Positions 10,367-44,215 of a DNA stretch of 61,838 nt are shown in pieces (position 1 is the first letter of the stretch; each line of letters begins with the position of its first letter). The translations under genes were made by a program, and so were the position numbers. This stretch comes from Klebsormidium nitens (taxonomy: Eukaryota; Plantae; Klebsormidiophyceae). The notes under the pieces were generated by a model. That model searched no databases, was not told the DNA's origin, and saw only the letters and a program-made list of their open reading frames with translations. Location of the stretch: NCBI GenBank assembly GCA_000708835.1, contig DF237483.1:1-61838 (forward strand). Reading direction: 5' to 3'.

Positions 10367-12718
10367 TTACCAGAGCCTGTTCTTCAGGCCAAGCGCTACA
10401 TATACAAGGCCCAGAAGGACCGGCACCTCGATCAACGGGCCAACAACCGCCGCAAGTGCCTCCTCGGAGTTGATCCCAAAGCTTGCCACTGCCACAGCGA
10501 TTGCCAGCTCAAAGTTGTTGCTTGACGCGGTAAACGTTTGGGTGATGCTCTTCGGATAGGAGATCTTGAGAGCGCAGCAGACGGCCAGCGTGCCCCAGAA
10601 CGTGATGGCGAAGTAAACGAGGAGAGGCACCGCCACGCGTGCCACGTCACCCAGGTTGTGCACGATCTGCTTGCCTTGCAGTGCAAACATGACAAAGATG
10701 GTGTACAAAAGCCCAATCAGCGCCGTTGGCCCGAACCAGGGCAGAAACTTCCGGTCGTACCACTGCGCTCCCCTCCACTTGCGCAGCACGAGGCGCGTCA
10801 GAAAGCCCGCGGCGAGGGGAAGTCCCAGGAAGAGCGCGACGCTCTTGGCTACGGTGCTGAAGCTGACGCTGACCGAGCCCCCCGAGACGACGTTGAGGAA
10901 GAAGAGCACAGCGGGGGCGTACAGCACTATTTGCAGGATGGAGTTGAAGGCAACTAGGATGGCGCAAAAGTCGGTGTCCCCGCACGCGAGCTGGTTCCAG
11001 ATCAGCACCATCGCGATGCACCGCGCGCAGCCAACCAGGATAACCCCGTTTCTGTAACCCGAAAGGTCTGGCAGAGTGGCCCATGCGATCCCAGTCATGA
11101 GCGCGGGCCCGATGAGCCAGTTAAGCACGAAGGAGATGGCAAGCTGGTTTCGGAGGTCGGGTTCCAGCAACTGCTTGCCGAGAAGCTCGTAGCGGACTTT
11201 GCATAAGACGGGGTACATCATCCACCAGAGGCCGATGGCGATGGGGAGGGACACCGAGTCGATCTTGGAGCCGTTGAACCCGGTCTCGATGCCGGGGATG
11301 TAGTTCCCCGCAACGACGCCGAGTACCATAACAATGATGATCCACACGAAGAGGTAGCGGTCCAACCACCCGAGCGCTCCAACCACAGCTGCAAGTGGAG
11401 ACAATCGAATGCTTGACTGTTTTACACTAGCATTTGTGACTAATTAGAATGGTACCAGGAGTAATTCAGGGTGTGTCAAGCAGGAAGCAGTGCGGGCCAG
11501 TGTCATAACGAGAAGGAACCTCACAGTTACTCTCAGAATCTTTTCTGCCAGGCTCCCCAGAAGCTGCACCTGATTACTGATAACCTGAAAAATGTTCCTC
11601 CAAGGAACTCTCTTTTAGAATCTCAGCTCTTGACTTTCTTACAAGAGATTCAATGACAAGTTTGAACAACTCACATCTGAAGTTGGCGGGGCTTGAAGCT
11701 GAAGCCTCCTGCCCGACAGGTTCGGTTTCAAACGTTCCGGTGGGAACAGGTGCTGACTTGCATGGGATTGGCTCGTCCTGGTTGTCAAGCAGTACAAACG
11801 CTTTGGAATCGCAGTCCTGTAAGGACAAGATCGATCTTCGTTCACAAGGATCAATTGGGACTCCTGGTGCTGGATTTCATTGGGTATTGCGATGCTCAGT
11901 GAAGGAGTTGCCCTGTGGAAACTGTGCCTATCTGCGCAGAAGACAATTGACCAGAGTGTTTACAAACATTGATGAAGTTGCTCTGTATGTACTGGAAGAA
12001 CATGTCTTACTTGCATCTGAAACCGCCGACGTGTAGATAAGTTGTTTTTGTTGTGGTCTTGAGAAGAAATGCTTGACCTGTCAAACAGAGCCCCTAGCGC
12101 AATCATCCAACTTACTGGTGACATTAGTGTGGCGATAGTGAACCTCTGGTGACTTTCATTATGGTATTCTCAGAACAAGACTCCGTCTCTACGTCTCTAC
12201 AAGAAAGCCCCGGGGCACCTGGCTAAGAGACTATCACCTTGATGACAAAGTCAAATTGAACGCACAAAAGCATATGCCTCACACGAATAGCACACAGTCC
12301 ACCTGTTGGAGTGTCAGACTTGTACCACCCAGTCAGGGACAGCTTACGCATTTCACCTGTTGGTGAATGTCGGAAAAGGAATGTGGTACCGCCTCCGCTT
12401 GTTCTGCTTATAACCTCTCGCGCATATTCTTCTGCGCTTCACCTATAGCGGACGGCAGGCTTTATGGAGCTTGCATGACGGTTGGGGTGGATATTTGCGA
12501 TAACAAGATGAGGTATGCAGACCACTCAGCTTCTGCTTGCTTACCTCTGTCTCCACTGCACACTGCGCACTGCATCCATCTTCCGTGTAACTTGCATCCA
12601 CGTCATAGGCACTCCCAGAAGTGTTCACAAACCGACAGCGCAGCCCTTGCCGCTGCTCGATGTCAGCTCCAGAGAGAATGCCTGACACCTCCAGCGTGCA
12701 AACAAGCCTGTGCGCCAT
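10367..12718 (-). CDS. ACR3: ACR3-family arsenite/antimonite efflux transporter with a Cys-rich N-terminal extension
   Basis: Core exon 11388-10367 has about ten hydrophobic segments plus WLDRYLFVWI, GLWWMMYPVLCKVRYE, LVGCARCIAMVLIWN, FTASSNNFELAIAVA and GPLIEVPVL. Upstream exons 12718-12545 and 11816-11675 join in frame. Candidate microexons 12356-12348 and 12016-12011 are less certain. Confidence 0.93.
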
Positions 12719-14922: not shown

Positions 14923-17900
14923 ATGGCGCTCTTCAAGTGCTGCCTCGCCCCCAAGGGGGCCGCCAAGACCGCGCCGCTGGAGTCATCTTCCTCCCCAGTG
15001 ACGTCATCAAAGAGTGCCCTCAATGCAAAGCAAGGCTGCCTAGTCTCTTTGCAATTATCCGCTGGGTCCAATGTGCCACGTGGCATTCACCAAAAGGCGT
15101 CCGACGGCGGCACGGGCGTCCTGATCGGTCCGAACCTGGTCCTCACAAGCCATGACACCGTTTCCAGCAAGGAGCAGGCAGCCAGGGGCGAGGTCCAGGT
15201 GGTAGTGTCAAGCGGGGCGGGAGGGAAGGAGTACTTAGAACGGAGGCGCCTGTTGCCAGAACGGCTGTTTGTGACAGACCCCGAGTATGACGTCACGATC
15301 TTGGCCTGCGAGAGCGCAGCGGGGTTGTCGGGAGTGACACCGGTTGCACTGGAGGAGGCGTTGGAGATTCCAGAGGCAGATGTTGTTACTGGGAGGTAAG
15401 TACTTTTCTGACCATTGTTGAACATGACCCTCCGATTTTGTGGAGTGGATGCTGACTTAGGTGTGATACAAGCATCTTTGCACTTACATTGCAACAAACT
15501 TGCTTTGCTTTGGGAAGCCTGCCATGTCAAGGCTAAGGCATACAACTTTGTTGAAGGGTTTGTTTTGTAAAATGGTGGAGACTCCACTTTTTCTGGACGA
15601 GCTTTAGCTGGCGCTTCATTTCGTTGACGCTAAAATCCACCCAGAAAACTCTTCCAGGAATGGGAATGCCTGAGTCAAGAATCCTAGAGAAAGGTGTCTC
15701 AGTTCTTTCCTTGCTGCGGGTTCATTCTGCAGCAATGCTGTGTTTGTTCCCAAGTCTTCTTTGCAAGGAATACTGACAGCGGATGCTCAAGTCCTCCTTG
15801 ATGAAGAGCTCTTTCAACATGTCTCTGAGCCAGCCATGGATATTTACAACCAAGTTTCCATAGCAACTGTAAAGATGCTTTTGTCATGAAAGCACCAAAA
15901 GGGATGTAAGCTTGTCAACTACTGAGCTTTCCAAGTTAACAAAACAGCGCTTCACAAAAAGCTGCAGCACAAAAACTCTTATGTGTGCTGCACTCCAGAA
16001 TGGACATCTATCTTGAGAGAGTCATCCCAATCTTTCCGCTGGAAACGACATGGGGATGTCCACAGCTAAATATCCACATCTTTCTACCGGGAACGACGTT
16101 GAGATGCCCCACAGCGAAAAGTCCTGATAACATACGTCGTGCACTCCTGAGTGTTCAGCCGCACGCGTTTTGGCTCAGATAGCTCATTCTCGCAACTGAT
16201 TGGCTTCCCTGCTTCTATCTGCAGCCTCATCCACGTCATTGGGCGGCCTGCTGACGTGGCAGACCTGGAAGGCGACCACCTGGCGGTCGTGACGGGGCAG
16301 GGGAAGATCAAGTCGGTGGACGGTCCGTTCCTTAAGTTCGCGTCGAACAGCGAGACCTGGGCGCCCGGGTCTGCTGCTTTCGACGACAAAGGCCGTTTCC
16401 TGTTCCTAGTGTGTGGGCCCACCGAGGGAGGAGACGCCTCATCGCCCAAGTGAGTTGCAAATGCCTGACGGCTCTTCATCGGCGAGTTCGCAACATAAAT
16501 TAGGTATCTGAGATCGGAGTTGACCTGCTTCCTGATTCGACGAGGCTCTGGGAAGAAGCGCAGTCAGGCCCACGGCCATGTTGTTTGAGACATGGTTACG
16601 AGCTCAGAAGATATTTACATAAGGTCCTTTACAAAGAGTGGCGTGCTTTGAAGGGAAAATAGGATCGAGTACTTTGATGGGAGCGTTCTAGAGCAGTCGA
16701 CGTCGAATGTTCGACGTTTGTAATAGCGTGGGAGATTTGATGCAATCCTGGGGTCCGGCCCAGTGCGCTCTCATCTACTTTCGTTCTCGTAACTCTCAAG
16801 TATAACCAATCAAAAAGCTTGCAGAATTTCCCTCACCTTGATTTGCTGAATCGGCCTTGAATTGAACGCGAAAGCTGAGTCTGATGGCGACCTGCTCCTC
16901 GCTTCCAGGGGTAAAAAAGTCGCCGCCAAGCCGAAGAAGGGCGGCATCCAGTCGGGTACCACGGCGCGGGGGATCATCCACTGGCTAGGCGAGCAAGGGT
17001 TTAAGGACTTGGCGCGGCTCGGCCGTGACGACGAGACGCGGCCGGCTCAGGGTTTGGAGGTTCTGGCGCCTCTGGCGGACGAAACCGCTCCTCAGGCTCC
17101 GACGCTTCTAGACAACAAGATCGCTTCGCAAGGTTTGGCGGGGCCCCGATCCGAGGTTGGTGAGGCGTCCGAAGAGCATCTTTCTATGATAGAGATTGCG
17201 ATTGGAAATGGGTCAGAGGGACGAACGGAAACGGATTTCGTTGACAGATTGAACGGGGAGAACGGAACGGGGAAGCAAATTGCGGGAGAAGAATCCGAGC
17301 AAACGTCGGTGCAAGAGGACGCAGACAGGGCTCGCTTGGAGGCCCCTGAGACGGTTTCGGGCGGGGCGGGTTCCGCCCGTGACCCAAAGACGAGCGGAAC
17401 GGAACAGAAGGAAGCAGCCAGGGGCCCGGCACAGGGAGCGCTTGATGAGTGTTACGTGGACGAGATCGGACTGGTGGCAGCGGAAACAGCCGGCGTTTCA
17501 GGAGCGAATGGCGGGGCGTCCGCTTACTCTGCTAAGATCTCAGATGATGTACTACGTGGCGAGACGGTATTGGCTGCAGATTTGACACCGGAGTTCGGCG
17601 AGATGGTGATGGGAACGGCCGGAAGTGCAGCCCAGGAGGCGGTAACAACGGAAAAGGGACCGGACGGGACGGACTTGAACGGAGCTTCCAACAAGGAAGC
17701 TTCGCTAGGAGTGACGTCGGCAGTCGTGGGGCCTCCTTCAGAAGAAAAGACAAGCCCTGCAGGCGAAGCGACTGAGGGAGGACTAGCGTCTGGAAAGGAG
17801 GAAGCTCCGGCGATTCCGGCAGCGGCAAACCAGACGGCGGAATTGAAGCCGGGGGGCTCTCTGAAACCCCTTTCAGTCGGCGGATCGTCCCCCCAGAGCA

Positions 17901-20900
17901 CACCGAAAGGCGCCGAAAATTCACCGAAGTCCCGGGGGAGCCCAAAAGCGAACGGAAGCCCCAAGTCAGTCTGGAAACACCCCGGTGGAAATCCGGTGTC
18001 TTCCGCTGGGAGTTCCGGCCGGGGCGGCGGAAAGGACACCGAAAGGGACCAGAAGATGATCAAGCACCTGCAGAAGCAGGCGAAGCGCGCGGCCGCGGGC
18101 GCGAAGCCGGCCAACGGCGGGGAGACACGTGGCGGCGCGTCGGGGCAGCTGTCTCGGAAAGGAAGCGGTCGCCTAAAGGAGAAGCTTAGCGATAGCAGTG
18201 CGGGTTTGATTACACCGACTGGAAACGAGAAGAAGGCTGAGCCGGAAAGCAAGGCTTTGACACCAGGAGTGATGGCCCACGACGCGACGGCGGTGGAGCC
18301 CGCTGTGGTGTCAACTGGAGTGGAAATGGAGGAGAATTCGAAGCCGGTCGCGAGCGAAACGACAACGGAATCTGACGGAAAGCCGACGCCTGATGCAACT
18401 GAGAACGCCGGATCAGCTGCGAATGACGAGCCGTCCGTTCCGTCCTCCGTTTCCGGTGGACCGGAATCCGCTGTGCAAGACAAGGCTGCCACGGATACAC
18501 CCAATCACGCTCAAGAGGCAGAGACTGGTATCAGCAAAGAGAGGGACGGGAAGTCAGCCGAGGGTGAGATTGACGAGAAGAGGGAAGCGGAAACGGAAGC
18601 ACGGCGGAAAGCGGAAGTCGAAGAGCAAAGAGAGATTGCTGCGAGCAGGTTGAAGGAGGCGTGGGGAACGGAAGCGAGACGCGGTTCAAAAGACGGGGCT
18701 GGGGTCGAGAAGACCGGATCGGAAACGGAAAACGAGGCGCCGGAATTGCTGAGTGTGGGGAAAGACCTGGAGATCGGGGGCGACCGCTTTCTGCAGTTTT
18801 CCATGTCCGTGGCCGCCGCCAAAGAGAGCTTCGAAAAGCTGGCAAAGAGGGAGGAGAAGAGCCCGGAACCGCAGAGAAAGACAAGCAGCTTGAGCTCGCA
18901 GAGAGGGGCGTCAAAGAGCGGGGCTCGACGGGAAGCTGAGGAGGCGACACGTGGCAGGCGCAGGACGAAGGGATCCGTTGATACAAGCCCGATTGACGGC
19001 GAGGAACGGATGAAACGCACCGGCAGCTTGCGCCGGTTGCGCAGAACGGAGAGCGGTGAGAAGGAGAAACTTGGGGCGAGCTTGAAGGGGGGCAAGAAAA
19101 TGGGCCTCAAACCGCCCCCCGGGCTGGCGTGGAAGGCCAAGGTCGCAGAGGAGCGGAACGGAACGGCCGGAGAGCGGAACGGAACGAAGAAAGCGGTCAT
19201 TCTGGGGCGGGGCCTTGTGCCGATCGCGGGTGTCGAGTCCAAGCGGCGCAGCGGGGACGAGCTTTGGGCAGCGCAAAAGGGTTTGAGCTCGCAGGGTTTT
19301 GCGAGGGTTTCGGGCGGCGCGGCCGCGGAGCGCACGCTGAGCGTCAGCGACATCGACCTGGAGTCCGATTCGGACGCCTCTGAAAAGATTGTGGACGGCG
19401 AGAAGTATTCGGACGGGGAGGAAGAAGTCCGGCCGAAGGAGGCTTGGCCGGAAGAACGGAACACCGAGCAGACGGAAACGGAGCGGACGGAAGCGGAGCG
19501 GGCGGAAGCGGACACGGCGGATGTGGCGAACGGGGAAGGGTCCACTGGAGCCTGGAAAGTGGAAGGAGCCTCGCAAACGGAAGAAACCACGGCCGCTGCC
19601 GACGTTCCGGCGGAATCGGTCTCCAATCCAGCGGAAAGCGCTCCGGCTCCGGTAAACGGCGAAGTCGCGGCTGGGAGCGTTGCGGCTGAGCTTCCTGAGG
19701 CGACCGCTTCCGACGGGAAAGCCCATGGTACATCCGAGAGTCCTCTACAGGTTTCTCAGGCCGAAACCCACACGACGGAACCCCTAGAAGGTGACGCTGA
19801 AAACGCGACCGAAGCGGCCGCTGTCGCACCCACGACGGAGCCGGGGGCGGCGGAAGCGGCTGCTGACGTCATCGCCGGCATCATCGCGAGTGCTGACGTC
19901 AGCGGCGAGCCCGCCGCCGGGGATGCAAAGGAGCGGCCGAGCGTGACGGGGAGCGATTCCGGCGTGACGGAGGCCGCCGGAAGAGCGTCTGAAGACGCGG
20001 CGCGGACGCTGCGGGCGCGGAGCTTCTCGGCGTCGAGTGGTGAGCAGTTCACTCTTTGGAAATGATTAGCTTTCACGCTTTGGGCAGTCCGTTGAATATC
20101 CTTTTCGGCGTTCGAAAGTTTGGAGGCTGCTGAAGTGCTGCGAGAAACGGATGGGTGGTCGATGTTGCAAAAGCGTCGAGCTCGACGGGAGAGGCTGAGG
20201 CATAACTCTTAACGACGAGGCTGATCACGGAGTTGGATTGCTCCTAAACGTGGTTGTTTAGATCACTTGCACTTGCTTCTCTGATTTGTCCGACGAAACT
20301 GATTGCCAAGTTTGAGCCTGTGCAGCAATCGCTGGGAGGACACAGACGGTAGCAATTACTCTCCACAGTCTGGACAGCATGAAACATGGTAGCGGAATTC
20401 TGCAAGAAAGACTCGTCTTTGATCTTTGCCCCCTCCTTTTCGTAGGAGCCGAAGCGAGTGCCTCTCTAGTGAAGAGCCGCATCGAGGGCTTCGGCCGGCA
20501 GACCATCGAAGTCCCCAAGCCCCGCGCAAAAACCACCGAGGACAAGATCCGGACCGCGCAGGCGAAGCTGAAGTCGAACGTCCCGGTTCTGGGCCCGGTT
20601 CTAGGCCTCGGTTTAGAAATGGGTCTCCAGTTGGAGAAGAAGCTGAAGCGGGAGGAAGACTTGCACGGGCTGAAAAAGGCGACCAAGTTTAAGGTGAAGA
20701 AAGTGACGCCCCTGGAGGTCCCGGCGAATGCTACCGGGCAAAACGGGGGGGGACTGTCGCCGCAGACGAGGGGTCGGGAGATCCGCCCCGGGGTGTACGA
20801 GTCGGCGGCGCAGTCGCCCACGTCTCCGTCAGAAGCAGGTGAAAGAGGAGCGAAAGATTAGATGCATTTGCAGAGCGAAAATGAGAAGCTATTGCTTTGA

Positions 20901-24314: not shown

Positions 24315-27300
24315 TCATGCCAAAGACCGCAACCTTCCGCCGCTCCGAGACCACCCCTCCGCTTTCTTTTTCAAATCTACCACCAGAGCCGCCTCAAAGT
24401 ACACACTCAAAATCTCCCCCCCCTCGTCAAACTGGTTCCCGTGATACCCGCTCTCCTTCGCGTCCAGCAGAGCCTTCTGCCCTGGCCGGGGCGCCACAAA
24501 CAGGACCTTCTCCGCGCGCGCGGCCGCCTCCCATTTGTACTTCGGCTTGGGCCCCTCTCCCATCAGCCACGCCAGGTCCTCCTTTGAAAACGCGTAGCAA
24601 GAACAGACGGACGTCCCCTCTCCGTCCGCGAAGTTCTCCGGATCGTCGCATTCGTGCGGCAGAGTCCAATGGTCGCGGAGCACGACCGTCAGCATTTCCA
24701 CCGGGTATGCGCGAGACACCGCCTGGTAGAGAAAAAGATCCATGCTTGCGTTCATTGCGTTCGACTGCAGAAAGTGAGGGCCGGATTTAACCCAGTCCAA
24801 AACAGTAACTTCCTATTTCAGTGCCTTCACTTCTGAGGTGGAGAGGCCTTCAAGTAGCCACGGGACATAAGCTGACATTTTTTGGGTATGTATTGCAAGG
24901 GCCACTGCCTAGGACGGCCGGAGTCGTTACAAAGCTTCTGGGTGGCTTTTGACTGCGGAGCGGGCAGTATTTCGCTTTCTTGTCACGATTTTTCTGTCGC
25001 TGCAAAAGGATGCCCTTGCAAGTCATCGAGTCAGGAGTAACCTGGTAAAGCTCCCAGTCGGTCCCTTTGAGCATCTCCGGGCGGACCAGGTTGGCCTGCG
25101 TGTAGTCGTGGCTCAGCAGGATGGTGACGTACTCGGTGGCCGGGTCGAGCGCCCCGAGCGCTTCGACGACGGCCTGAGCCTTGCGTTCCGCCCCCGGCTT
25201 GTTCCAGGGGCCACCGGTGAAATCCTCCTGCAGAAATTAAAAGACTGAAGTCACGATTCTTCGATTTAGCAATGATAAGCTTCAGCAAAAGTAAGCTAAC
25301 CAGCCTAGGACGGGTGGGGTTAGTTTGGGGGTTTAGGGTGGGTACGGGTGCGGAGCAGGTTTTTTTGTGGGTTAGATTTTTAGCTTTAATGCAGGAGCTT
25401 ATTTTTGCTAGAGATTAGTTTCGCTAGAGTAAAGAAACATAGTAAAGTCTGCTTCTTGTCAAAATGGGCTTTTTTTTCCCTTGGTAAAGAGGCTTTGAAC
25501 TAGCTGTGAAAATTGTGTCTGTCTTTTGGAAAAGCGACGTTACCAAGTTTAGCCTCTCGTCTTCCTGCTTAAAGTCTGCTCTCAAGGTCTTTCAAGATCT
25601 CGTGGCGACCAATGAAACCTCTGCAGTTTTGACTATCTCATCGGTGTGTGATTTCCTGTCGTTCCAGATTTCCATGAGAAAGACTGGTGGAAGGTGCAGC
25701 CCCAAACCAGCGAGGTTCAAGGAGCTCAACTGTAAAGTAAGGCCCTTCAATGCATCAAAAGAGCAGAAGGTGTTTGTCGCTTACCTCCACTTCTAGATAA
25801 TGATGAGAGTCATCGTCGTAGGTGATCTTGTATCCAGTCTCTTGCAGATTGTGCGGTAAGCGATGGCATCGGTTGGGGGCCCAAAAGGTACCCCCCTTCT
25901 GCGCTTCTTCCTGGATGATGCTGAATGTGAGGGTCGCACGATACCCGCTTTTGACCTCCTTGACCACGTGCAAACAATCGCCGTACATAGCTGCCCACTG
26001 GACGGTTTGCCGGTCCCCGGAAAGGGGGGCAAAGTCAAACACGTGGTCGACCCCCCCATGAGAGACCACGAGCTCGCCTGCATTGCGGAGATGAAAAATG
26101 TAGCCCGGGCAGGTTTTACGGAGGTTTAGAGACGAATGAGGAAAGGACCACAGGAAATCTTGACTTAACCAGATCTGCTTTAGCGGATTCTTGATCTGGT
26201 TTAGCGGATGTTTGTCAGAATGTTTGTCAGAATACATACCAGTCTAACGTGGGAGAGTGGCATCTAATTCTCGCATGAGCAGGCTTGTTTGGACATATTT
26301 CCTCTCTGTGAAGGCAAGATCGTCCTGAAGAGTGTTGAGGCGTTTCAAATGGCCCAGTCGCCTCAAAGAAGTGGGGATGCACTTCACATACCCATCCGAA
26401 GGCTCTTGATAGTACTTTTCACATCGCGCAATATTGTTATGTCAATGGCAGAATCTTGGACAAATACGTCAGCCAGACGTGGTCTTTTCAGTCGCTTACC
26501 GCCTTCATGCTCCGACGGCAGGCAGACCACCAGCGTCCCGATCATGTTCTCCGCGTTACGGGGGGAGTCCACGTGGCGCTTGAAGAACCCTCCCTCCCCG
26601 TAGACGTTGATCTTGTACGGCAGGAGCGAAATCCGGTGGCCGTGTGCCATGTGCTTCTGAATATGCTCCATGATAGGCCGCAAGAAGATCGCCTGCGTAA
26701 GAACCATGATAAGACTGGTTTACGGTCGGGAATCATGAACGGGAGACAATTGGCCCAGGCCAGTTCGAAATCTTTCAACCGGAGTCTAGCGCAAGTCTCT
26801 TCTAAGGCAGACGTACTCAGTGCCTGTGTCATCAAAGCACATGTAACCCGTGTGATACGCTCTCACGCAGGTAGCGAAGATGTCGCAGGCGTGTTGATCG
26901 GGAAGCTGACGCAAGATGCCTGCTGCAACCGGCAACTCGCCTTCAGCATCTCCATGAAAACGTAGTCAGACCGCCTCAATCACTCAATTCTCACCTCAAT
27001 CAGGCTCCCGCTCCGTTAGGTTACCGCTTCCTTGCTGGTCATGAGTGTTCCTTTAAGATGCGTAATTCTCACACCTACGCAAAGGAGCTTGCAGATTACC
27101 TTGTAGTATTTGTAGTCCGGACGCGACTCTCCGGCAAAAGGATCGACCACCTCGACAAGAGTTGCCAACGCGTGCTGGCACCAGGCAGCGGTTGGCGACC
27201 CAGCTTGTGATCCACAGTCGCAGACGTAGGAAAACGACGGAGACTCCCAGTAACCAAAGCCTGCTCTGGAGGAGTGCGGTTCTGGAATGTTGGTTGCGGT

Positions 27301-29123
27301 GATCCTCGATTTTAACAAGCGCTCGCCTTCTGTGACCTGCAAAACCTCACAACGAATGCTCAATTGCACTGATGTACTCGCAGCATCGCCTTTAGTTGGC
27401 ATAACGCATTTGAACTCACTGATTTGATCAAATTGTTCCTATGCTGATTAAGCTGACCTAAAGAAGGCATAAATTCGAACATGGAACTCGCGGCTTTTGC
27501 ATGTTGTGACGAGGGATGTCTTGGTGGTTCTGGTCCACTTGCGTCATTCAATCACCGTCTCGACACAATTCGAAAGAAGATAGTTAGATTGTGACAACCA
27601 CTTTGTCTTCATTAGGAGACAAGTTAGGTGAAATCATCACGATCTGGTTCATGCTCTTACCCTCGCCTTGAACGTAGCTGTGTAGTAACCCTGACTCTCA
27701 TTGTGCCTCGACTTCTGGACAGATGTTTGCGTGATGGTCTGGACCGTGGCATGCCCCTTCAACAGCTTGAGCTTTTGCTCCTTGCCGAATCCCAAGCGGA
27801 CGAGAGTCTCCTGAAGAAGTAAAGATTAGAGAAGTCTTGTCCATCTTCCACGTATAATGAGTGAATCCTGTCTTGGACCTCGATTTGCGCGCCATGATAG
27901 ATATCAAGCCATCTACATGCACCAGAATCTATCTTCGATTGTCGCCTGGGTGTGCTTTTTACTAGAGATATTGTTTGCAATGCATGGTCCAAGCGGGTTA
28001 TCAGTTTCAGTTGGCAGCCTAGTCGTCAAAGCCTTCCCTTTCGCACTTGCTTTTGTAGCGACTGCGTTCCTAATTGTCTGCTTCTTATCGACAAAAGCAG
28101 AACGCGGAATTGGAAAAGCATTTCTTACCATAGACAGGCCTGGGACGTATGTCCTATGGTCATCGATGTGAGTATAGTCAAAGTCAAGATGGAAAAAGGC
28201 CTCCCAAGCTTTCCGAATGGAGTAGTTGACCACATTAGCTCCCTCCTTCAGGTCTCCAAAGCCCGCAATATTGCTCTTCTCAATGACGGTCTTAAGGGCA
28301 AGGTTCGTGATAGTCTCAGCAAGCGTGGTTTTTGGAGCTGCAAAGTAGGAGGAAAGAAGAGGTTGGTAAAAGCCAATCTGTACTAGCCCTCGTAATGCTG
28401 CTGAAAGTTGAGACGCACATTTGCTAGATGATAGTTGGAAAATATAAGCGATACTGTGAGGCTATAAACTCCAAAAGTTCTGGACCTGCCCAGCCAAAGG
28501 CAAATAGATGATTCAGAGCGCTGGCTAATGGTCTACGCAATCGACCCCAGGATATTTTTGAGGCTTTGATCAAACTTGGCAACAAAACAAAAGAATGAAC
28601 AAAATTACACAAAATCAAAAGGCAAGAAGGTCTTTGCCCTCGGATAGATTTGTACTTAAGCGAGTCTGGCCTCAAAGAACAAGCAGCCTGTAAGCGGTTT
28701 CCGAGTCAAGCTTTGAAAGTGCACTCGTAGTTCGCTCCAGGTTACTTTCGTTTATAATCTGTTCTAAGCAATGATGGAAATCGAGGTTTTTGTTCAAATG
28801 TACGTACCGGAAGAGGACGAGGTCAATGTGCATTCCTGAGGATCCCCATCCAGAAGCTTGACCAGCAAACTCTTCTGGTCATTGTCAGGTAGCTTGACTG
28901 AACCTCCACAGCAGAAGACGTTTTCCTCCGAAAATCCCTTGAAGAGCTCATTGACTCTTCCTGCAAGAAGACGCTCCTTTTCGCTGTAATCGTCACACTG
29001 GACTTCCTCAATTTGATTCACGCCCTTGCTCCGGAGGCTTCCCAACGGGATGCCAACTTCCTCAAGCTTCTGAAGCGCCTTCTGCAGCTTTAGGAAGTTC
29101 CTGACCAAATGAGTAGGCTCCAT
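24315..29123 (-). CDS. 2OG-Fe(II) dioxygenase (P4Hc/2OG-FeII_Oxy_3-like) with inserted SWIM-type zinc finger, copy 1, 663 aa
   Basis: Exons 29123-28808, 28337-28129, 27810-27661, 27336-27100, 26692-26500, 26077-25785, 25227-25042 and 24722-24315 total 1992 nt in frame. Catalytic motifs YKINVYGEGGFFKRHVD, IGTLVVCLPSEHEGGELVV, YGDCLH..EVKSGYRATLTF. Zinc motif CDC-x11-CQH. Confidence 0.88.
25300..25390 (+). repeat. Dispersed G-rich repeat, copy 2 (intronic, multiple G3+ runs)
   Basis: ccagcctaggacgggtggggttagtttgggggtttagggtgggtacgggtgcggagc. The host intron is 557 bp versus 290 bp for the paralogous intron. Confidence 0.7.
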
Positions 29124-29982
29124 CAGGGAAGAGGCCTTGGCTTTCAACTGGATAAGACTAAATGTGTCTTAAGCAACCTGCTCTTGAAAGAACCAGCGAA
29201 GACGAGAAGCGAATAAGCCGCTGCGAAGGCGGGGCCGTCGCCAAATCGAACATCCAAGATGCTGTCTCGCCTCAGCGGACGCCACAGAAGTACTGAGCAG
29301 GATAAACGAATGAACAAACACCGTTGTTTTCTCCGATGCACGGCAGCCGGGCGACACGGCGGCCGCCTGCAGTCGCGTCACGTGCCAGGCCGCCAGCTCG
29401 GCAACGCAGAGCGGCGGCACATTGCGCGGCCGCGCGCCGAAAGCCGCGCGCGTCCGGAAGAATTACACCGTGGCAGCGCGCAGGGGCCGTCGCATCGCGT
29501 CGCCAGGACCATTCCTTTCGTGACGCCCAGATGCTTCGCTGTCCAATACCTTCGGACCGCGTGCCTAGTAGTGGCATGCTCCGCGATTTTGATAAGTGCT
29601 TTGAACTTGAGGGCACGGAAATCATTGGGCTCGTTATCATCCGCACGTCTTTCCCGACAGCTTATTGGACTTGTATATTGAGGAGCTAAGCTGAACAGGT
29701 TGAACCCTGCGGCTTATGGTGGTTTCGACATTCTGAGGTGCTCCAGCCGCGTAGGTCACCCAATGAGTATGAGACAGTCAACGCGCAGACTGAATCAGCT
29801 TGGCGGCTAAAACTTGATTGTAGCTGTATTGAATACGAAGCCTGTGCATCTTGCAGACAAATCAAGTTCAAAATGTCGCCGCGCAAAAGGCAACATGCAT
29901 CCGAAGAAACCTGCTTAGACCTTGAGAACCTGCCGTCCAGACTTTCTCTACCGGGTCTCTATCTTCCTTCTTCGACTGTCCA

Positions 29983-32900
29983 TCAGACTTTCTTTGCTAT
30001 CTCGATCACTAGCGCTGCCTCGAAGTACACGCTCAGCGTTTCCCCGCCCTCTTCGTACTCATTCCCCGAGTAGCCGCTCTCTCTTTCTTCCAGCTTCGCC
30101 TTCTGCGCGGCCGTCGGCGCGACGAGCAGCGTCTTGCCCGCGGCCGCGGACGCCGCCCACTTGTACTCCGGCTTAGGTCCCTCCCCCACCAGCCACGCCA
30201 GGTCCTCCTTCGTGAAAGCGTAACAAGAGTATTTGGCCGCTCCCTGACCCTCGTGGAAATCCTCATTACTTTCATCCGGAAGATTCCAGTGATCGCGCGT
30301 CACGACCGTCAGCATCTTGACCGGGAAAGCCCCGGCCACTGCCTGGTGCAGCACCCAGTCGCTCCCCTTGAGAATCTCGGGGCGGAGAAGGTTGGCCTGC
30401 GTGTAGTCGTGGCTCAGCAGGATGGTGACGTAATCCGGGGCCGGGTCAAGCGCTCGGAGGGCCTCCACGATGGACTGCGCCTTGCGCTCCGCCTCGGGCT
30501 TGTTCCAAGGGCCGCTGCTGACCTCATCCTGAAAAAGGTCGACAAAAGCATATTCGGATTGCGCAGGCTTGAAATGAAATCTACTCTTGATAGAAGCACC
30601 TAGTACAAGCTAACAGGTCTTGCTGCGCACATCATCTGTTCCGTCCGTGCAGATCTTTCAATATGGCCAGATTGAAGAATGGATATTCACGGACCGTGCT
30701 TACGAAGCGTTTGCTATAATTGAACCAGACTTGAGAACCTGGAATACAAATTCAGCAGAAGCATCGATTATCATCTTGGAAAAACAGCTATGGAAATGCG
30801 GAAAATCCGGCTGCCCACCTCCATTTTCGGAAGGTCGTAATGGCCGACGTCGGCGTTGATCTTGTATCCAATATCTGACAAGTTGTCGCGCACACGAGGA
30901 ACCTCGGGGTCGGAGCGACAAATCCAGTAGGGACTCTCCTCCTCCTTCGGTTCTTCTTCCTGGATGATGCTGAAGGTGAGGGTCGCCCGGAAGCCCCTCT
31001 TCACCTCCTTGACCTCGTGCACGCAGTCGCCGTACATGGCGGCCCACTGGACTCGTTCCCGGTCACCGGAACGAGGGGCAAAGTCAAACACGTGGTCGAC
31101 CCCCCCATGAGACACAACAAGCTCTCCTGTGCACAAAAGAAAGCCTGTTGACGGGGCCGGAAAAGTGGATTGCTGGGGCCGAAAAAGTGGATTGCTTAGT
31201 TTTATCGCTTCAAGTCGTGATCGGAGACGAATATGGGCGGAGCTAAGAAAACACTTTGGTGTCAGCTTCATCCACGAAGGTGGGTTTATACTTTTCACAA
31301 GTTACATCACCCTTGTGAAGCAGGTGATCCCTGGAAGGTGAAAACGTTTTTTGCACGCTAGTCAGAGAAGCCGCATCGCATTATTTTTGAGGACACGTAA
31401 AGTAGTAGCTCATTTTCACGGATTTGCTGGCATGGAGCCACTCACCGCCCTCGTGCTCTGACGGCAGGCAGACCACCAGCGTCCCGATCATGTTCTTCAC
31501 ATCCCGGGGGGAGTCCACGTGGCGTTTGAAGAAGCCGCCTTCCCCGTAGACGTTGATCTTATACGGCAGGAGCGAGATACGAGCGCCGTGGGCCATGCGC
31601 TCTTGGATGTGCTTCATAATGGGTTGCAAAAAGAGCGCCTGCAGAAAGGTGGTAGATAAAGTCCATCAAGGGCTCTGAATTTCACCACGATCGAAGTACT
31701 GGAAGGAAAAGCGCACCTGCAGAGATGATCGGATGCAGATCTGGCAGCCTTCAGTGTGTGGACACTAATGTGGCCTCCGATGTTCTGGTTATTAGCGTAG
31801 ACCCGCGTTTCCTACGCTGTCCGGATTGGAACGCAACTGATCGCGATAGCTGCTTACCGGAATTTGGTGGTGCCTTGCAACCATTGGAAGTCAAAGACGT
31901 GTCGAAGTCGCTGCTATCAGTTGTTTCATGGAGAATCACGCTTACCTTGTTGTATTCAAAGTCCGGGCGCTTCTTGTTCGCCAACGGATCGACCAACGCA
32001 ACGAGAGTCGCCACGGCGTGGTCACACCAAGTCAGGGCCGACTTTGCTGCCCTTTCTCCACATTCGCACTCGTACGATAGTTGTAGGGCGTTCTTGTCGT
32101 AAAGGTCAACGTGAGCATAAGCCTCCTGGGGCTCCTCGACCTTGCCAGCAGTGACTGTTGTCTTCAGGGAACGGTCGTCTTTTGTAACCTGCAAAGCAAG
32201 GAACTTTTCCAGTCGAACTCAACACACAAGATTTGAAACATGCAAACTCCCAACTTTGGAAGTGTGATCCAAGCAGCGCATAGATAAATGTCAATCCGCA
32301 GATGCCTCTTTAGTAACTCCTTTAGACCGTTCCTGCCACGTACTGGATGGCCGAATGCTAACGGATAAGACCCGTGGTTCTGGTTTGCTCCTCACAAGTG
32401 ACACAAAGGAGCTCTGCCTTTTGAGGAGCAGACTCACAGGGGAGAGATCTCAGTTGCTTAGCAATAGGCTCACGTCAAGCAAAGCTCGCGTCAAGCAAAC
32501 AATCACTCACCTTTGCGGTAAAAGTTGCTGTATAATATTCCGGATCTTCCACGCTCCGTTTCGTTTTCAGTGCCTTTGTTGAGACCGCTTCGATCGTTGC
32601 TCGCCACTCCAAATGATCCAGCCGCCCTTGGCTCCCCAGTCCCAGACGGACGAGATATCCCTGAAGGAAAGCACTGCGCCCTTTAGAAAACCGCCAAGAC
32701 AGCAGAATAGATTGCTTCTGAACCAGCTAAGAACAAGCTGAGAGATGTACATGTGATCTAGGAAGTTTCAAAACGTACTTCTCGAAGAACCTTGTTCTAA
32801 AAGCTGGGCAAAGCCTCCTTACTTCAAATCCTACTCTTCATTATCCAAAGAACTTCTGAATTCGGAAGCAGTTAGGACACAGTATACCTTAGCAAATGTG

Positions 32901-34175
32901 AGATGAGAAGATTTGCAATTTTGGAGCCAGAACGTTATTGGATCCTGCAGTTTTCAGTGACCAATCGAGCTTGAGCTATTCGTTCCGTGCTTGTAGAGAG
33001 AGATAGCTTAGTAACGAGGTTGCTGCCGAAAGAGGAAATGCAGACGAAGGCAAAAACAGTCGGTCTATGAACAGAAGATGGCTTCTGAGCGACCGACTTA
33101 AATTCCGAACATCAATTCATTGATTCTTACCCTGGACAAGCCTGGAATGTAGGTCCTGCTGCTTGGCTTGTAGCTGTAGTCGAAATCGAGATGGAAGAAG
33201 GATTCCCAAGCCTTTCTGACAGAGTAGTCGACTACGTTTGCTCCTTCTTTTAGGTCGCCGAACCCTGCTATGCTGCTCTTCTCAATCACATTCTTGAGGA
33301 TGAGGTTCGTGATACTCTCAGCAAGGGTAGTGTTTGGTCCTGCACCGTAAGTTGAACAGAGCTAAGCAAGTTATCATTTTGTGGTCACTTGATTGGAACA
33401 GGGTGATACCTCAGCGCGCCCGCTAGCTAGATTGTACCTAATAGGTTCCACAGGAGTTTCAATCATGCAAGAATCTCTTGTCTACACACATTGATCATGG
33501 AAAGCACCATGCACAAGCTTCAGTGCCGCGGCATCCTAGAAGTAGAGGTTGAACAAACTCAGGTGTAAAAGATGTAAGCAAAGGGCACAGTATTCGGGAT
33601 TCACAAGTCTCAGCAGACGGTCTTGAAAGGCGTTTGGAAGATGCTGAAAGCCTGCAAAGCTCTGGTTCTCACTTCATGGTGACTGTTAACATTTTTGAAC
33701 GAGCTCAACTGCGTGACTTCTGACGAATAGGCACACAAGGTTTTGCGTAAATGTAGGGGATTGGTGCTTGTTCCTTTGGTTGTGGATCAATCAAAGCGCC
33801 TTCGTTGCGAGGAGCACTTTGTCTTGGAAGTTGGTTTTACTCACCAGATTGGCCAGTCTCTGTAGCGGACGAAGGCAGCGTGGAACTTTGGGGGGGCCCA
33901 TCCACAAGCTTCACGATCACGCTTTTCAGGTCATGTTCTGGCAGCTTGACCAATCCTCCACAACAAAACACATTCTTCTCGGCAAAGCTTCCGTAGAGCT
34001 CCTTGACCGTGTTTGCAAGAAGACGCTCTTTCTGTCCGTAGGTGGTGGACTTATACCGTTTCCCATAAAATGTCCCTTCGGTTTCGATGCTTCCAAGACG
34101 GAGACCATCTTTTACAATCTTCCTTAGGGCAGTCTGCAGCTTCTGGAAGTTCTGGACGAGAGACAGGGGTTCCAT
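29983..34175 (-). CDS. 2OG-Fe(II) dioxygenase with inserted SWIM-type zinc finger, copy 2 (tandem paralog), 659 aa
   Basis: Exons 34175-33845, 33339-33131, 32660-32511, 32188-31946, 31638-31446, 31126-30819 and 30528-29983 total 1980 nt in frame. RHVD and YGDCVHEVKEVKRGFRATLTF intact. Zinc motif CEC-x11-CDH. Confidence 0.88.
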
Positions 34176-37533: not shown

Positions 37534-38481
37534 TCAGGCCGCCTTGACTTTCGCAGACTCCGCCTGAATTTTCTTTGGCATGTTGAACAAGAGGCTCCCA
37601 AGCACCCAGTCAAACGCACGGTCGCTTAGCGCCGACCGCAGCCACAAAAACACCTTGCCCGAGAAGGGCGCCACATAGCGCGACCTCGGACGCTTCACGG
37701 TGACCGCCGTCCAAATCGCGTCCGAGATAACTTTGGGCTCTGCTGCATGGGGCCCCAACTTGGAGTGCACCTCCGCCGCCCTCTCGGCTATCTCCCGGTA
37801 AGGCCCCGTTCCCGAGGTCTTCATCATGTTGTCCACCATAATGGGAGCCCACTCCGTCTTGATCCCCCCTGGCTGAACCACAACCACGTCAATCCCGAAG
37901 GGACGCAGCTCGTTGCGGAGGCAATCAGAGAAGCCCTCCAGCGCAAACTTGGAAGCCTGATACCAGGCCCCCAGAGGTGACCACACCCGGCCCCCGATCG
38001 AAGAAACGTTGATGATGCGCCCCGACCCCTGCGCGCGCATCGTGGGGAGCGCCAGCTGGATCAGGTGCGCTAACCCAAAAAGGTTAACCTCCATCTGCGC
38101 CCGCGCGTCGCTCAGCGGCACCTCCTCGACCGCCCCGTACGCGCCGTAACCCGCGTTGTTAACCAGCACGTCGATGCGCCCGCTGGCCGCCAGGACCTCC
38201 CCCACGAACGCCTCGATGCTTTCGGGCTGGGTCAGGTCCAGGTGGTGTAAATGCGCCCCTTGCGCCCCCAGCTCGCGCATTGCGTCGACCCGCCGCGCGC
38301 CAGCGTGGACCTCGTACCCCCCCTTGAGCAGCCGCAGGACCGTCGCCAAGCCAATGCCGCTGGAGGCCCCTGTCACGATCGCCGTCTTCTTGCCGGAGGG
38401 GGGAACGCCATTGGCGGCTGCCTTCAGAACAGGCGTGGTGTCTTCGTTGGTCTGAGCTGCAGATGTCTTTGCTGTGGCCAT
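37534..38481 (-). CDS. Intronless classical short-chain dehydrogenase/reductase, probably NADP(H)-dependent, 315 aa
   Basis: Single ORF from ATG 38481 with TGASSGIG, ARR, DVLVNNAG, SS and YQASK motifs. Confidence 0.95.
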   Translation of the reverse strand: MATAKTSAAQTNEDTTPVLKAAANGVPPSGKKTAIVTGASSGIGLATVLRLLKGGYEVHAGARRVDAMRELGAQGAHLHHLDLTQPESIEAFVGEVLAASGRIDVLVNNAGYGAYGAVEEVPLSDARAQMEVNLFGLAHLIQLALPTMRAQGSGRIINVSSIGGRVWSPLGAWYQASKFALEGFSDCLRNELRPFGIDVVVVQPGGIKTEWAPIMVDNMMKTSGTGPYREIAERAAEVHSKLGPHAAEPKVISDAIWTAVTVKRPRSRYVAPFSGKVFLWLRSALSDRAFDWVLGSLLFNMPKKIQAESAKVKAA

Positions 38482-41575: not shown

Positions 41576-44215
41576 CATGGAGGCGTTGCTGAACACCGTG
41601 CACTTTGACCCCCCCGTCTGGGAAGACCTACTGCAGATGGACAGACGAGACCTCCTTGGAATCTGGGACTGCGATGGCCAAGTAAGGCATATTTGATCTA
41701 CTCTGGAGAAAGTTTTCTGTTCAGATTCGTCTCCTTTTGGAAAAAACATCCGACCTGATGAGTAGTGTGCAAGATAGGAAGGTCAGATCGTAAAATACAG
41801 GACGGCTGGATTTTGGGCAGAAAGGAGAGCGGGTCTCTAGCTTCTTTGAACGCTGTCAATCTCTCGTAAATATCGACAGCGTTGTATTCCACTTTGAACG
41901 GCGACGGAGACTTGGATGTTGCGCATTGTCATAAGCGTCATTCGAAGTCAAAAACATGTGTGCCACTTCAGCATTTCTTCTTGGCGTGCTGCAGACAATC
42001 TGAATAGCTAACATGAGGCGTCACTTCTGATCGGACTCTCCTCGCAGACATCCTCAGCCTTCCAAAGAAGGAGGAACATTGATGAGCTGGCGGTCAGTTT
42101 TTCGAAACTTTGAAAGAATGGAAAGATTCCTGTCTTAAAGATGCTCACGCCGTGAAATTGGTTATCAACAACTCGATGTGCGACGTTTCTGTTTCTGTCA
42201 AGGCTCATGCCAGACGCTTTCAGACATCCGGAGGGCCACAGCGAGACGAACGTCTCAAACTTGATGCAACAAGAAAACACCGCTGCCATCGAACCACAAG
42301 TCTTGACACACGCGATCTTCTTCTGTCAGGGCCAGGACTTCCTTGCCGGTTTAGTGTCAGCTGTGTACTACCCGAGACCCAAGCACGAGAGCGTCCGCCC
42401 TCCAGACGACCGCAACCCCTTCGGCTGGATTGGAAACGTGGTGGTTCATCCAAGGTACCAACACCGATTAGACTTTACTCGAAGAAGAGGGCTTGAGTTG
42501 TCCAGCTTCAAAAACCGCAAAGTGATGAAATTGTATGATCTTCTTTTGTATGCAACTCCGAGTTGGCACATGAAAGGCACCTACACTTTTCTTCTGCATT
42601 AGACGTCCATCTTAAAAGTGCACTGCGCCGAAGTCGAGGCTTTATACATGCTTCTCACCCACTTTCGGAGCCGTGTCCGTAATAGCAAGCAAATGCCGGT
42701 TCCCCGTCCTTGACCCTACGTTTGCCCCTCTTTACCAGGTACCGCAGCCGGGGTTTAGCCCGGGTTCTGCTTTCGGACGCCGTACACCACCTGCAGTCCG
42801 GACGGCGGTGCCGGGCGGTCCTTTTGGACGCGACGCCGATGGGCAAGCAAGTGTACGACAAGATGGGGTTCCAGGACGTGTGCCCGGTCCACCGCATGCA
42901 GATCGCGCCGGAGGATTTGCAGCGAGCACTGGAGAATCTAGAGAGTGGCGGAGTAGAAGCTGGCGGGGGGGCGACTTTAGAGGTTAGCAGTTTAGGGGGG
43001 GACAGAACGTGGAGTGAATCAGAAGCGGGGAGTGTTTCCGGGGCTGAGGATGGAGAGAGCAATGAACGGGGGAGCGGATTTAGAAGAAAGCGAAGGAGTG
43101 AAAACACGGGTTTTGGTTTGCTGGGTTCGATTCTGCGGGACATCACCGAGAGCGACCTGGACCAGGAGGTGACGCTCGCTGACGTCAGCAGCGCGGCAGC
43201 GGCCGTGCGGCGCATCGACGAGGAGGACACGTGGAACGCCGTGGTGGCCTGCGACGGGCAGGTGTTCGGCGCGGACCGGGCCCTGTTGCTGCGGCGGTGG
43301 CAGCGGCGGAGCCCGGAGTGCGCAGTGTGGCTGCCGAACACGGGCCCGAACAGGGCCTCGGAAGTTGACGGCGAGAAAGACCGGGCAGAGAGCAGTTCTC
43401 TGGGAGGCCCTGTAAAAGGGTTCGCTTTCGCGCACTCCAGGCGAGAGTGCCACTACTTGGGGCCCGTCGTGGCGGGGGACGGGGCCTCGGCGGGGGCCCT
43501 GCTGCTGACGCAACTGAAACAGGTGTGCCCTTCGCATCTTCTGTGTCTGCCTTTGGGCTTTGTCATAGCCGTTTTGCCATTCTCATTTTATCTGCTGATA
43601 CTTCGAGTCGCAGCTTTTGCGCGAGCTACTTATCTCGTTCCCGGAATTTCACCCAGTCTGCCGGGTCGACTTTGTTTGGAGCGCTGAGTGCGAGCGAATT
43701 GATCTGGCTTTGACATTGGAGAGTTTGCTGTAGTCGGTCGTTTGTCTGTAAGTCGCCAGTCAATGCTCTGTTTTCTCACCAGCAAGCTCGAACCCTTTGA
43801 ATTTGTTTAAGCACTTGTCGGTGCTCAGCCGGGTCTCGATGCTCGCATAAGCTCTGATGGTGTGCTGAAGCTGTGGCAAGCGCAGTGAGGGAGTTCAAGA
43901 TGTTACGAGCTCCATTTCGACCATCTTCGTCGAAGAAGGCTCCGCGAAGCGAAACGAGTAATACCAAGACCTTAGAACAAGCCCGAGAAAAAGCAGCATT
44001 GCTTGCAAGCCCCCAAGATAGATTTACCAACAAGCGTTCTTCCGCAGATTGCCCGGCAGAACCGGTCCGGCGATCCTCGCCCGTGTGTCATCTACATTGT
44101 GGAGCCACCCGAAGGGCTGGAAGCGACCGGGCAAAGCACCCGGGGGGACTACCTGGCGTGGAGCCGGTTCCTGGAAGGCCTCGGGTTTCGGCGGGAGGAC
44201 ACGACCATACGTCAG
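41544..44215 (+). CDS. Two-domain GNAT N-acetyltransferase (YitH/Acetyltransf_18-like); both termini unresolved
   Basis: Exons 41544-41681, 42330-42454, 42739-43522 and 44048-44215 join in frame. Motif A WIGNVVVHPRYRSRGLAR; LDATPMGKQVYDKMGF; second-domain motifs DGQVFGADRALLL and YLGPVVA. Confidence 0.85.

Follow-up and report, generated by a model that had tools for sequence, protein, structure and literature searches.

Oxygenases that depend on iron(II) and 2-oxoglutarate (2OG) and are targeted by a zinc finger are well known; PHD2 carries a MYND finger, and chromatin demethylases and TET enzymes carry PHD or CXXC fingers. The MYND finger of PHD2 (EGLN1) docks p23 of the HSP90 machinery (PMC6916684). 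A further finger class, SWIM, is recognized by the signature CxC-xn-CxH, in which n is usually 6 to 16, and the SWIM domains solved or studied so far are interaction surfaces, as in the contact of Shu2 with Shu1 (PMC5727457). We analyzed a stretch of 61,838 nt from the alga Klebsormidium nitens (assembly GCA_000708835.1, contig DF237483.1, positions 1 to 61,838; hereafter the window). In this intron-rich eukaryotic DNA, two neighboring minus-strand genes, A and B, are predicted to encode 2OG oxygenases of the prolyl-hydroxylase type that carry a SWIM-like finger within the catalytic fold. The joining of a 2OG oxygenase to a targeting zinc finger is of a known kind, and what would be new is a SWIM finger placed inside a PHD-type fold by way of two symmetric exons. 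The original prediction had described the pair as an undescribed system, which overstates the case: what the genes present is one protein with a lineage-restricted domain insertion, in a prolyl-hydroxylase-like family whose members also bear SAP, BTB/PBZ and UBA modules. The architecture was indeed unfamiliar, as that prediction said, and was not met among ~170 family members or in the literature searched, which gave gene lists only for the pairing of SWIM with a 2OG oxygenase or with any oxygenase.

A tandem pair of prolyl-hydroxylase-type oxygenases

Gene B (34175–29983) comprises seven exons, at 34175–33845, 33339–33131, 32660–32511, 32188–31946, 31638–31446, 31126–30819 and 30528–29983, for a total of 1980 nt (659 codons plus stop). 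Gene A (29123–24315) comprises eight, at 29123–28808, 28337–28129, 27810–27661, 27336–27100, 26692–26500, 26077–25785, 25227–25042 and 24722–24315, for a total of 1992 nt (663 codons plus stop). The two are paralogs arranged head to tail with 860 bp between them; they and all their features given below are on the minus strand. We derived the gene models from paralog and homolog comparison, three-frame translation and splice-site reading, and checked each exon in phase. All exons of both genes are open in phase, and all introns are GT-AG. Exon by exon, A and B are 38 to 78% identical in amino acid sequence; synonymous divergence (dS) is saturated, and a DNA comparison of the two halves detected no similarity between their introns. 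The genes differ by one additional intron of 319 nt in A (24723–25041), which splits a last exon that is single in gene B and in three B-like copies from other contigs (L002, L004 and L009). A 9-nt repeat, CT(T/C)TACCAG, stands at both ends of this intron. Recent gain of the intron was considered and dropped: the A-like copy on another contig, L010, has an intron at the same codon and lacks the repeat, and the intron in gene A is therefore not recent. It probably predates or postdates the A/B split, and the repeat is probably due to chance.

Similarity searches were run separately on the individual exons of A and B. The HxD of the iron-binding triad lies in the motif RHVDSP of both genes (B, 31507–31524, in exon 4; A, 26561–26578), and the distal histidine in DCVHEV of gene B (31028–31011, exon 5) and DCLHVV of gene A (25979–25962). 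In a 68-sequence alignment of the family, this HxD...H triad aligns to the invariant residues H234, D236 and H296. In 2OG oxygenases, the basic residue of an RxT/S motif on the last jelly-roll strand binds the C5 carboxylate of 2OG; the corresponding arginine lies in FRATLT of gene B (30992–30975, exon 5) and YRATLT of gene A (25943–25926), and R326 and T328 are nearly invariant across the same alignment. Exon 4 matches PF13640 (2OG-FeII_Oxy_3) at E 3.5e-5 to 5.5e-5 and 24.5 to 25.1 bits, just under the cut-off of 27, as exons 4 and 5 each encode only part of the domain; a full-length homolog, P0014, reaches 38.3 bits. Both copies contain the full Fe/2OG set claimed in the original prediction (HVD, the distal histidine in DC[VL]H, and R-A-T), and both also contain the flanking motifs it listed, FCCGG, FGD..VRKAWE and LSHDYTQANL..LKG.DW.

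Fold type was judged on an AlphaFold2 model of P0028, a metagenomic homolog that lacks the insert, and not on the algal protein. The model has a mean predicted local distance difference test score (pLDDT) of 76.9 and a predicted template modeling score of 0.79. Its nearest solved structure is PPHD, the EF-Tu prolyl hydroxylase of Pseudomonas putida (Foldseek E 1.4e-8; VIA Z 14.2, root-mean-square deviation 3.4 Å over 164 aligned residues, model residues 120–335), and it matches Trichoplax PHD and human PHD2 at Z ~13. Lower matches include algal and viral P4H, PiuC/YbiX-like enzymes, OGFOD1 and, at Z 11.3, AlkB. The best structural matches to the catalytic domain, PPHD (PDB 4iw3/4j25) and Dictyostelium PhyA (6t8m), share its HxD...H...R chemistry, but they are single-domain proteins of ~200 residues that have neither a zinc finger nor the C-terminal HxYT..LKGxD domain. 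PHD2 is alike both in its type of catalytic fold and in being a 2OG oxygenase joined to a zinc finger. It differs in that its MYND finger, which belongs to another class, precedes the catalytic domain, whereas the algal finger is inserted within it; sequence identity is 12 to 15%, and the algal family has extra N- and C-terminal regions. By motif content and the homolog model, A and B appear to encode active Fe(II)/2OG oxygenases of the PHD/P4H structural type. Given the intact catalytic set and a fold type shared with protein prolyl hydroxylases, the most likely chemistry would therefore be 2OG-dependent hydroxylation of a protein residue.

The host family is widespread. The last exon, searched against 1.8 billion representative proteins, matched only 17, mostly exon fragments; among them was P0014 (Asterias rubens LOC117307226, 507 residues), full length and insert-less. 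Word searches seeded with P0014 and with P0028, which is closer to the algal genes, gave 57 and 161 family members, respectively, from starfish, many fungi, chytrids, Balamuthia, Physarum, Pythium, some bacteria and many metagenomes. These proteins are nameless or labeled 'Fe2OG dioxygenase domain-containing protein'; the literature searched yielded no paper on the family, and a PDB sequence search with P0014 no solved structure for it. The motifs run in the order FxCGG, PAxFGD..VRxA, a jelly-roll with the invariant H, D and H, then HxYT..LKGxD, with GNE near the C terminus. As read from these motifs, the jelly-roll core of a family protein, with its HxD...H...RxT, is preceded by an N-terminal FxCGG/PAxFGD..VRxA region and followed by a C-terminal HxYT..LKGxD..GNE domain. 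Exons 1, 2, 4, 5 and 6 of A and B carry the family motifs, and their BLAST matches to family members are collinear.

Some family members are decorated with small modules: SAP (P0066), BTB with a PBZ zinc finger (P0083, P0094), UBA (P0062) and Sel1 (P0136). These modules, all in other lineages, hint that the family may work in chromatin, in DNA damage or in a ubiquitin-linked process. They resemble the algal case as a repeated gain of small binding modules, some of them between domains, but the modules and their positions are different; none is SWIM, and none lies in the loop that holds the algal insert. The SAP motifs are inserted between the jelly-roll and the C-terminal domain, and in Physarum BTB is combined with a PBZ-type finger; P0071 is a further decorated member. 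Close to the far C terminus of two long members, P0127 (residue 698) and P0069 (C terminus), there is a Cys/His cluster such as CDC..C..x12..CEH, in a position unrelated to that of the algal insert; P0069 is apparently bacterial, to go by its composition only.

A two-exon insert in the catalytic fold

In both genes, exon 2 ends in ...HLDFDY...GLSR (B) or GLSM (A), and exon 4 starts with ALFLQPIM (B) or AIFLRPIM (A), followed after one residue by HIQ. Between them stand two exons, 3a and 3b, each beginning and ending in phase 0. In gene B, exon 3a (32511–32660) encodes 50 residues of isoelectric point (pI) 9.2, with acceptor cttcag| and donor |gtgagt, and exon 3b (31946–32188) encodes 81, with acceptor ttgcag| and donor |gtaagc. 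In gene A, exon 3a (27661–27810; 50 residues, pI 10.2) is followed by an exon 3b of 79 residues (27100–27336). The insert totals 131 residues in B and 129 in A, which agrees in length and position with the ~130 extra residues originally placed at 32660–31946 and 27810–27100. Exon 3b contains the finger, CEC-x11-CDH in gene B (32068–32018) and CDC-x11-CQH in gene A (27222–27172). The finger had been described as the end of the insert; it lies within the insert as stated, but occupies residues ~91–107 and is followed by a helix and tail of ~24 residues. The four junctions that flank exons 3a and 3b are all in phase 0, and the exon pair acts as a symmetric cassette. Exon 3a is basic (pI 9–10) and exon 3b acidic (pI ~5).

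The insert has no counterpart in the rest of the family. From VRxA to the start of the jelly-roll, the distance is 30 to 79 residues in the 103 homologs that have both landmarks, compared with 183 in the algal genes, and in none of the 103 does a CxC..CxH occur between these landmarks. Insert-less P0014 and P0028 share with A and B all family motifs from FxCGG to GNE and the same order of regions; they differ in this linker, which has neither a Cys/His cluster nor any counterpart of exons 3a and 3b. Exons 3a and 3b gave zero BLAST matches among ~170 family members, to which exons 1, 2, 4, 5 and 6 do match. Pfam and NCBIfam scans of the insert exons returned no significant family, and PDB sequence searches with exon 3b and its profile returned nothing real (one chance match, to factor H, at E 0.8). 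A metagenome scan with the insert profile gave 181 pattern matches, of which 0 were confirmed, and a word search with the same profile found only further algal exon fragments and no relatives outside that group.

On the P0028 model, the insertion point falls in the loop 188–197, between a strand (184–187) and a helix (198–211) that leads into the first jelly-roll strand. The superpositions on PHD-like structures begin at about residue 120 of P0028, and the modeled insertion site is for that reason internal to the catalytic fold rather than at the edge of a domain.

Nine further contigs, from two JGI samples and several Logan runs, hold this gene; its exon order is unchanged there, and the insert is at the corresponding place. 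L002, L004 and L009 are B-like, being orthologs with the exon order of gene B. L010 holds a tandem pair, an A-like copy first and a B-like copy second, and the first of these is the ortholog of gene A with the additional last intron. This pair (L010:1-5808, Logan SRR23617307) has the opposite order to that in the window, a sign that some relatives may have an array that is longer or has been rearranged. L005 and L006 hold more distant copies, and L007 and L008 a divergent 'type II' with a 17-residue finger spacer. The type II finger reads CEC-x17-C(E/V)H (L007:6500-10750 and L008:3300-11100). In the L007 copy, a cysteine replaces the distal iron-binding histidine, and the L008 copy has an apparent frameshift within exon 4. 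The two may be copies in decay, or non-catalytic ones, in which the finger persists; assembly errors are the alternative. Every gene copy found retains the insert, which so far appears to be confined to Klebsormidium-like algae.

We compared 13 distinct copies of exon 3b from the window and these nine contigs. Pairwise identity ranges from 26 to 91% (median 43%). Invariance is limited to seven columns (C, C, W, C, H, A and D), which include all four Cys/Cys/Cys/His ligands; the chance that four named positions would all fall among 7 invariant columns of 81 is ~2e-5. The ratio of nonsynonymous to synonymous substitution rates (dN/dS), computed by the Nei–Gojobori method on unsaturated pairs only, is 0.22 to 0.33 for exon 3a and 0.18 to 0.25 for exon 3b, compared with 0.14 to 0.45 for exons 1, 2, 4 and 6. 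Between gene B and its L002 and L004 orthologs, the values are 0.22 to 0.32 (exon 3a) and 0.23 to 0.25 (exon 3b). The GT and AG sites of the insert exons are conserved across all copies, and at the exon 3b donor a valine codon (GTN) follows the last Lys or Glu in 13 of 13. The claim that all four ligands persist under selection amid divergent neighbors was borne out by their invariance in 13 copies and by an insert dN/dS of 0.18 to 0.33. This conservation argues that the insert is genuine coding sequence in both genes, under purifying selection, and that the putative zinc-ligand set is its most conserved feature.

Identity of the finger and role of the insert

Several comparisons point to a SWIM-type finger. 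In the spacing CxC-x10/11-CxH followed directly by a hydrophobic helix, the insert agrees with the signature and its usual spacer: n is 11 in A, B, L002, L004 and L009 and 10 in L005, and it is 17 in L007, L008 and two further sequences, P0181 and P0182. For reference we collected 120 bacterial and archaeal loci by a CSCP..CKH DNA pattern and cut 30 SWIM segments from them, 27 of which pass PF04434 at E<=0.01. In hhalign, a profile of six insert copies matched the 30 segments with 86.2% probability (E 4.9e-6, 33 columns), ligands falling on ligands and helix on helix, and a wider alignment of 67 SWIM segments gave 81%. Shuffling every column of the insert except those of the four ligands gave a mean score of 16.6 (standard deviation 5.0), compared with 31.9 for the real profile, which was reached in two of 150 shuffles; the resemblance to SWIM therefore extends beyond the four ligands. 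Among the look-alikes that the ESM atlas gave for exon 3b, 28 of the 30 named ones are PF04434 clusters of small bacterial proteins, with a score of 0.92 and 174 shared features, values in the range reported as typical of true family members; for the last exon, the atlas gave no usable match. PF04434 is also the sole Pfam family matched by any insert copy (L005, E 0.029, 14.3 bits; P0182, E 0.27, 11.2 bits), in each case aligned exactly over the finger. Compared with PF04434 proteins at large (bacterial and archaeal members, Shu2/SWS1, ZSWIM and MULE/FAR1), the insert shares CxC-xn-CxH, the hydrophobic helix right after CxH and a profile match of 81 to 86%. It differs in a Trp before the third Cys, in a Gly for the usual Pro after CxC, and in its setting: the algal module is within an enzyme fold, whereas known SWIMs are terminal or beside SNF2 or transposase domains.

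The SWIM assignment of the original prediction holds with respect to profile similarity, atlas look-alikes and ligand conservation, but not with respect to the Pfam threshold or to exon 3a. Several points count against it and against the wider account given below. Pfam SWIM scores always stayed under the 19.6-bit cut-off, with a best of 14.3, and the window's own insert copies gave no PF04434 match at E up to 10. Choosing the reference set by CSCP..CKH inflates the weight of the ligand columns, for which the shuffle control corrects only in part. Modeled alone by AlphaFold2, exon 3b has a pLDDT of 45.7, and the model was unusable for fold searches; even so, its low-confidence order of elements, a strand over CxC and a helix from CxH, is that of SWIM. 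Profile comparison of exon 3a with the N-terminal regions of bacterial SWIM proteins showed no similarity, nor did exon 3a resemble anything else searched. The resemblance is thus limited to the finger and helix, ~35 residues, and the ~90 residues before the finger have no detectable similarity to SWIM proteins. As regards function, no host family member with a known substrate was found, and net charge is uninformative, with exon 3a basic and exon 3b acidic. Transcript-derived sequence of the insert was not found, the protein collections holding only exon-sized open reading frames from genomic contigs; the presence of exons 3a and 3b in the mRNA is argued solely from conservation, phase and dN/dS. 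With all of this taken into account, we consider a SWIM-type identity for the finger likely, and its zinc binding and SWIM fold are predicted from the same comparisons.

The account that we favor, and hold to be reasonably probable as a whole, is that of a SWIM-type insert gained within one lineage of PHD-like oxygenases and serving probably as a docking module. Two symmetric phase-0 exons would have entered an ancestral gene of the Klebsormidium lineage, at a surface loop within the catalytic fold. These would have added ~130 residues, the last third of which forms a Cys2-Cys-His zinc finger of SWIM type with a helix after it. Duplication of the gene, partly in tandem, would have come next, with the insert retained. 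Located in a loop and having a metal site of its own, the insert is unlikely to be catalytic; it would lie outside the chemistry, as a zinc-stabilized docking module for a partner or substrate, which would more probably be a protein than a nucleic acid. A docking role is suggested by analogy with the MYND finger of PHD2 and with the SAP, PBZ, BTB and UBA modules of the host family.

The partner might instead be a nucleic acid, the module tethering the hydroxylase to DNA or RNA so that its targets are proteins bound to chromatin or RNA, or else the nucleic acid itself. The original prediction for SWIM was of binding to both DNA and proteins (PMC5727457), and both the basic exon 3a and the presence on other family members of SAP and PBZ modules, which have ties to DNA and poly-ADP-ribose, would fit such a tether. 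The acidic pI of exon 3b, which holds the finger itself, speaks against it, as does a catalytic fold that is nearest to protein prolyl hydroxylases and lower in similarity to AlkB; we judge it unlikely. Comparably doubtful, in our estimate, is that the Cys2-Cys-His site is a structural zinc clip that steadies an enlarged loop, or a regulatory lid, which recruits nothing and resembles SWIM by convergence. The short SWIM alignment of only ~35 columns, the subthreshold Pfam scores, the two ligand-fixed shuffles that match the real score and the lack of a homolog for exon 3a are what such convergence would leave. A clip would need less than 130 residues, however, and an insert of that size is kept in every copy with a dN/dS as low as that of the enzyme core; the atlas look-alikes with their 174 shared features are SWIM clusters in 28 of 30 cases, and the conserved residues that are not ligands (the Trp that precedes the third Cys, and an Ala and a Leu of the helix) match the SWIM helix pattern.

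Two further explanations concern the mRNA. The frame would be preserved if both exons were skipped, the four flanking junctions being in phase 0, and exons 3a and 3b could in principle be transposon relics or pseudo-exons in a long intron, with an insert-less protein as the product. We find this barely credible: both exons are open, their GT/AG sites are conserved in all copies and the GTN codon in 13, dN/dS is 0.18 to 0.33 while the surrounding introns diverge freely, and the insert persists in paralogs just 26 to 45% identical. A splice switch would be possible because both exons and all four flanking junctions are in phase 0. Inclusion of the cassette would yield an enzyme tethered through the finger to chromatin, nucleic acid or a specific partner, and skipping would yield the ancestral free form; we regard alternative use of the cassette as improbable. 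If true, splicing would govern where an oxygen- and 2OG-dependent modifier is targeted in this lineage, which stands near the origin of land plants.

Surroundings of the pair and its meaning

The neighbors of the oxygenase pair are ordinary: an SBF-family bile-acid/sodium symporter (10370–11404, minus strand, E 6e-52), a short-chain dehydrogenase (37537–38481, minus strand, E 8e-50) and a GNAT acetyltransferase (42710–43684, plus strand). A transposon source for the insert, by way of a MULE/FAR1-type SWIM, was considered; no transposon genes were seen beside the pair. An open frame of 1067 codons (16862–20065, plus strand) has no Pfam match, and the other strand also holds long open reading frames here; in appearance the frame is low-complexity or repeat sequence. 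No other part of the window is as GC-rich or as skewed as the region from 18 to 20 kb (GC 0.635, AT skew 0.36), which holds part of this frame.

The locus offers a clean example of domain gain, in which two symmetric exons entered a phase-0 intron and appear to have been kept under selection through several duplications. For a widespread enzyme family, the finger may serve as a handle on the partner and, through the partner, on the substrate; its practical value is modest. For the algae themselves, the insert flags what would be a streptophyte-alga-specific elaboration of oxygen- and 2OG-dependent protein modification.

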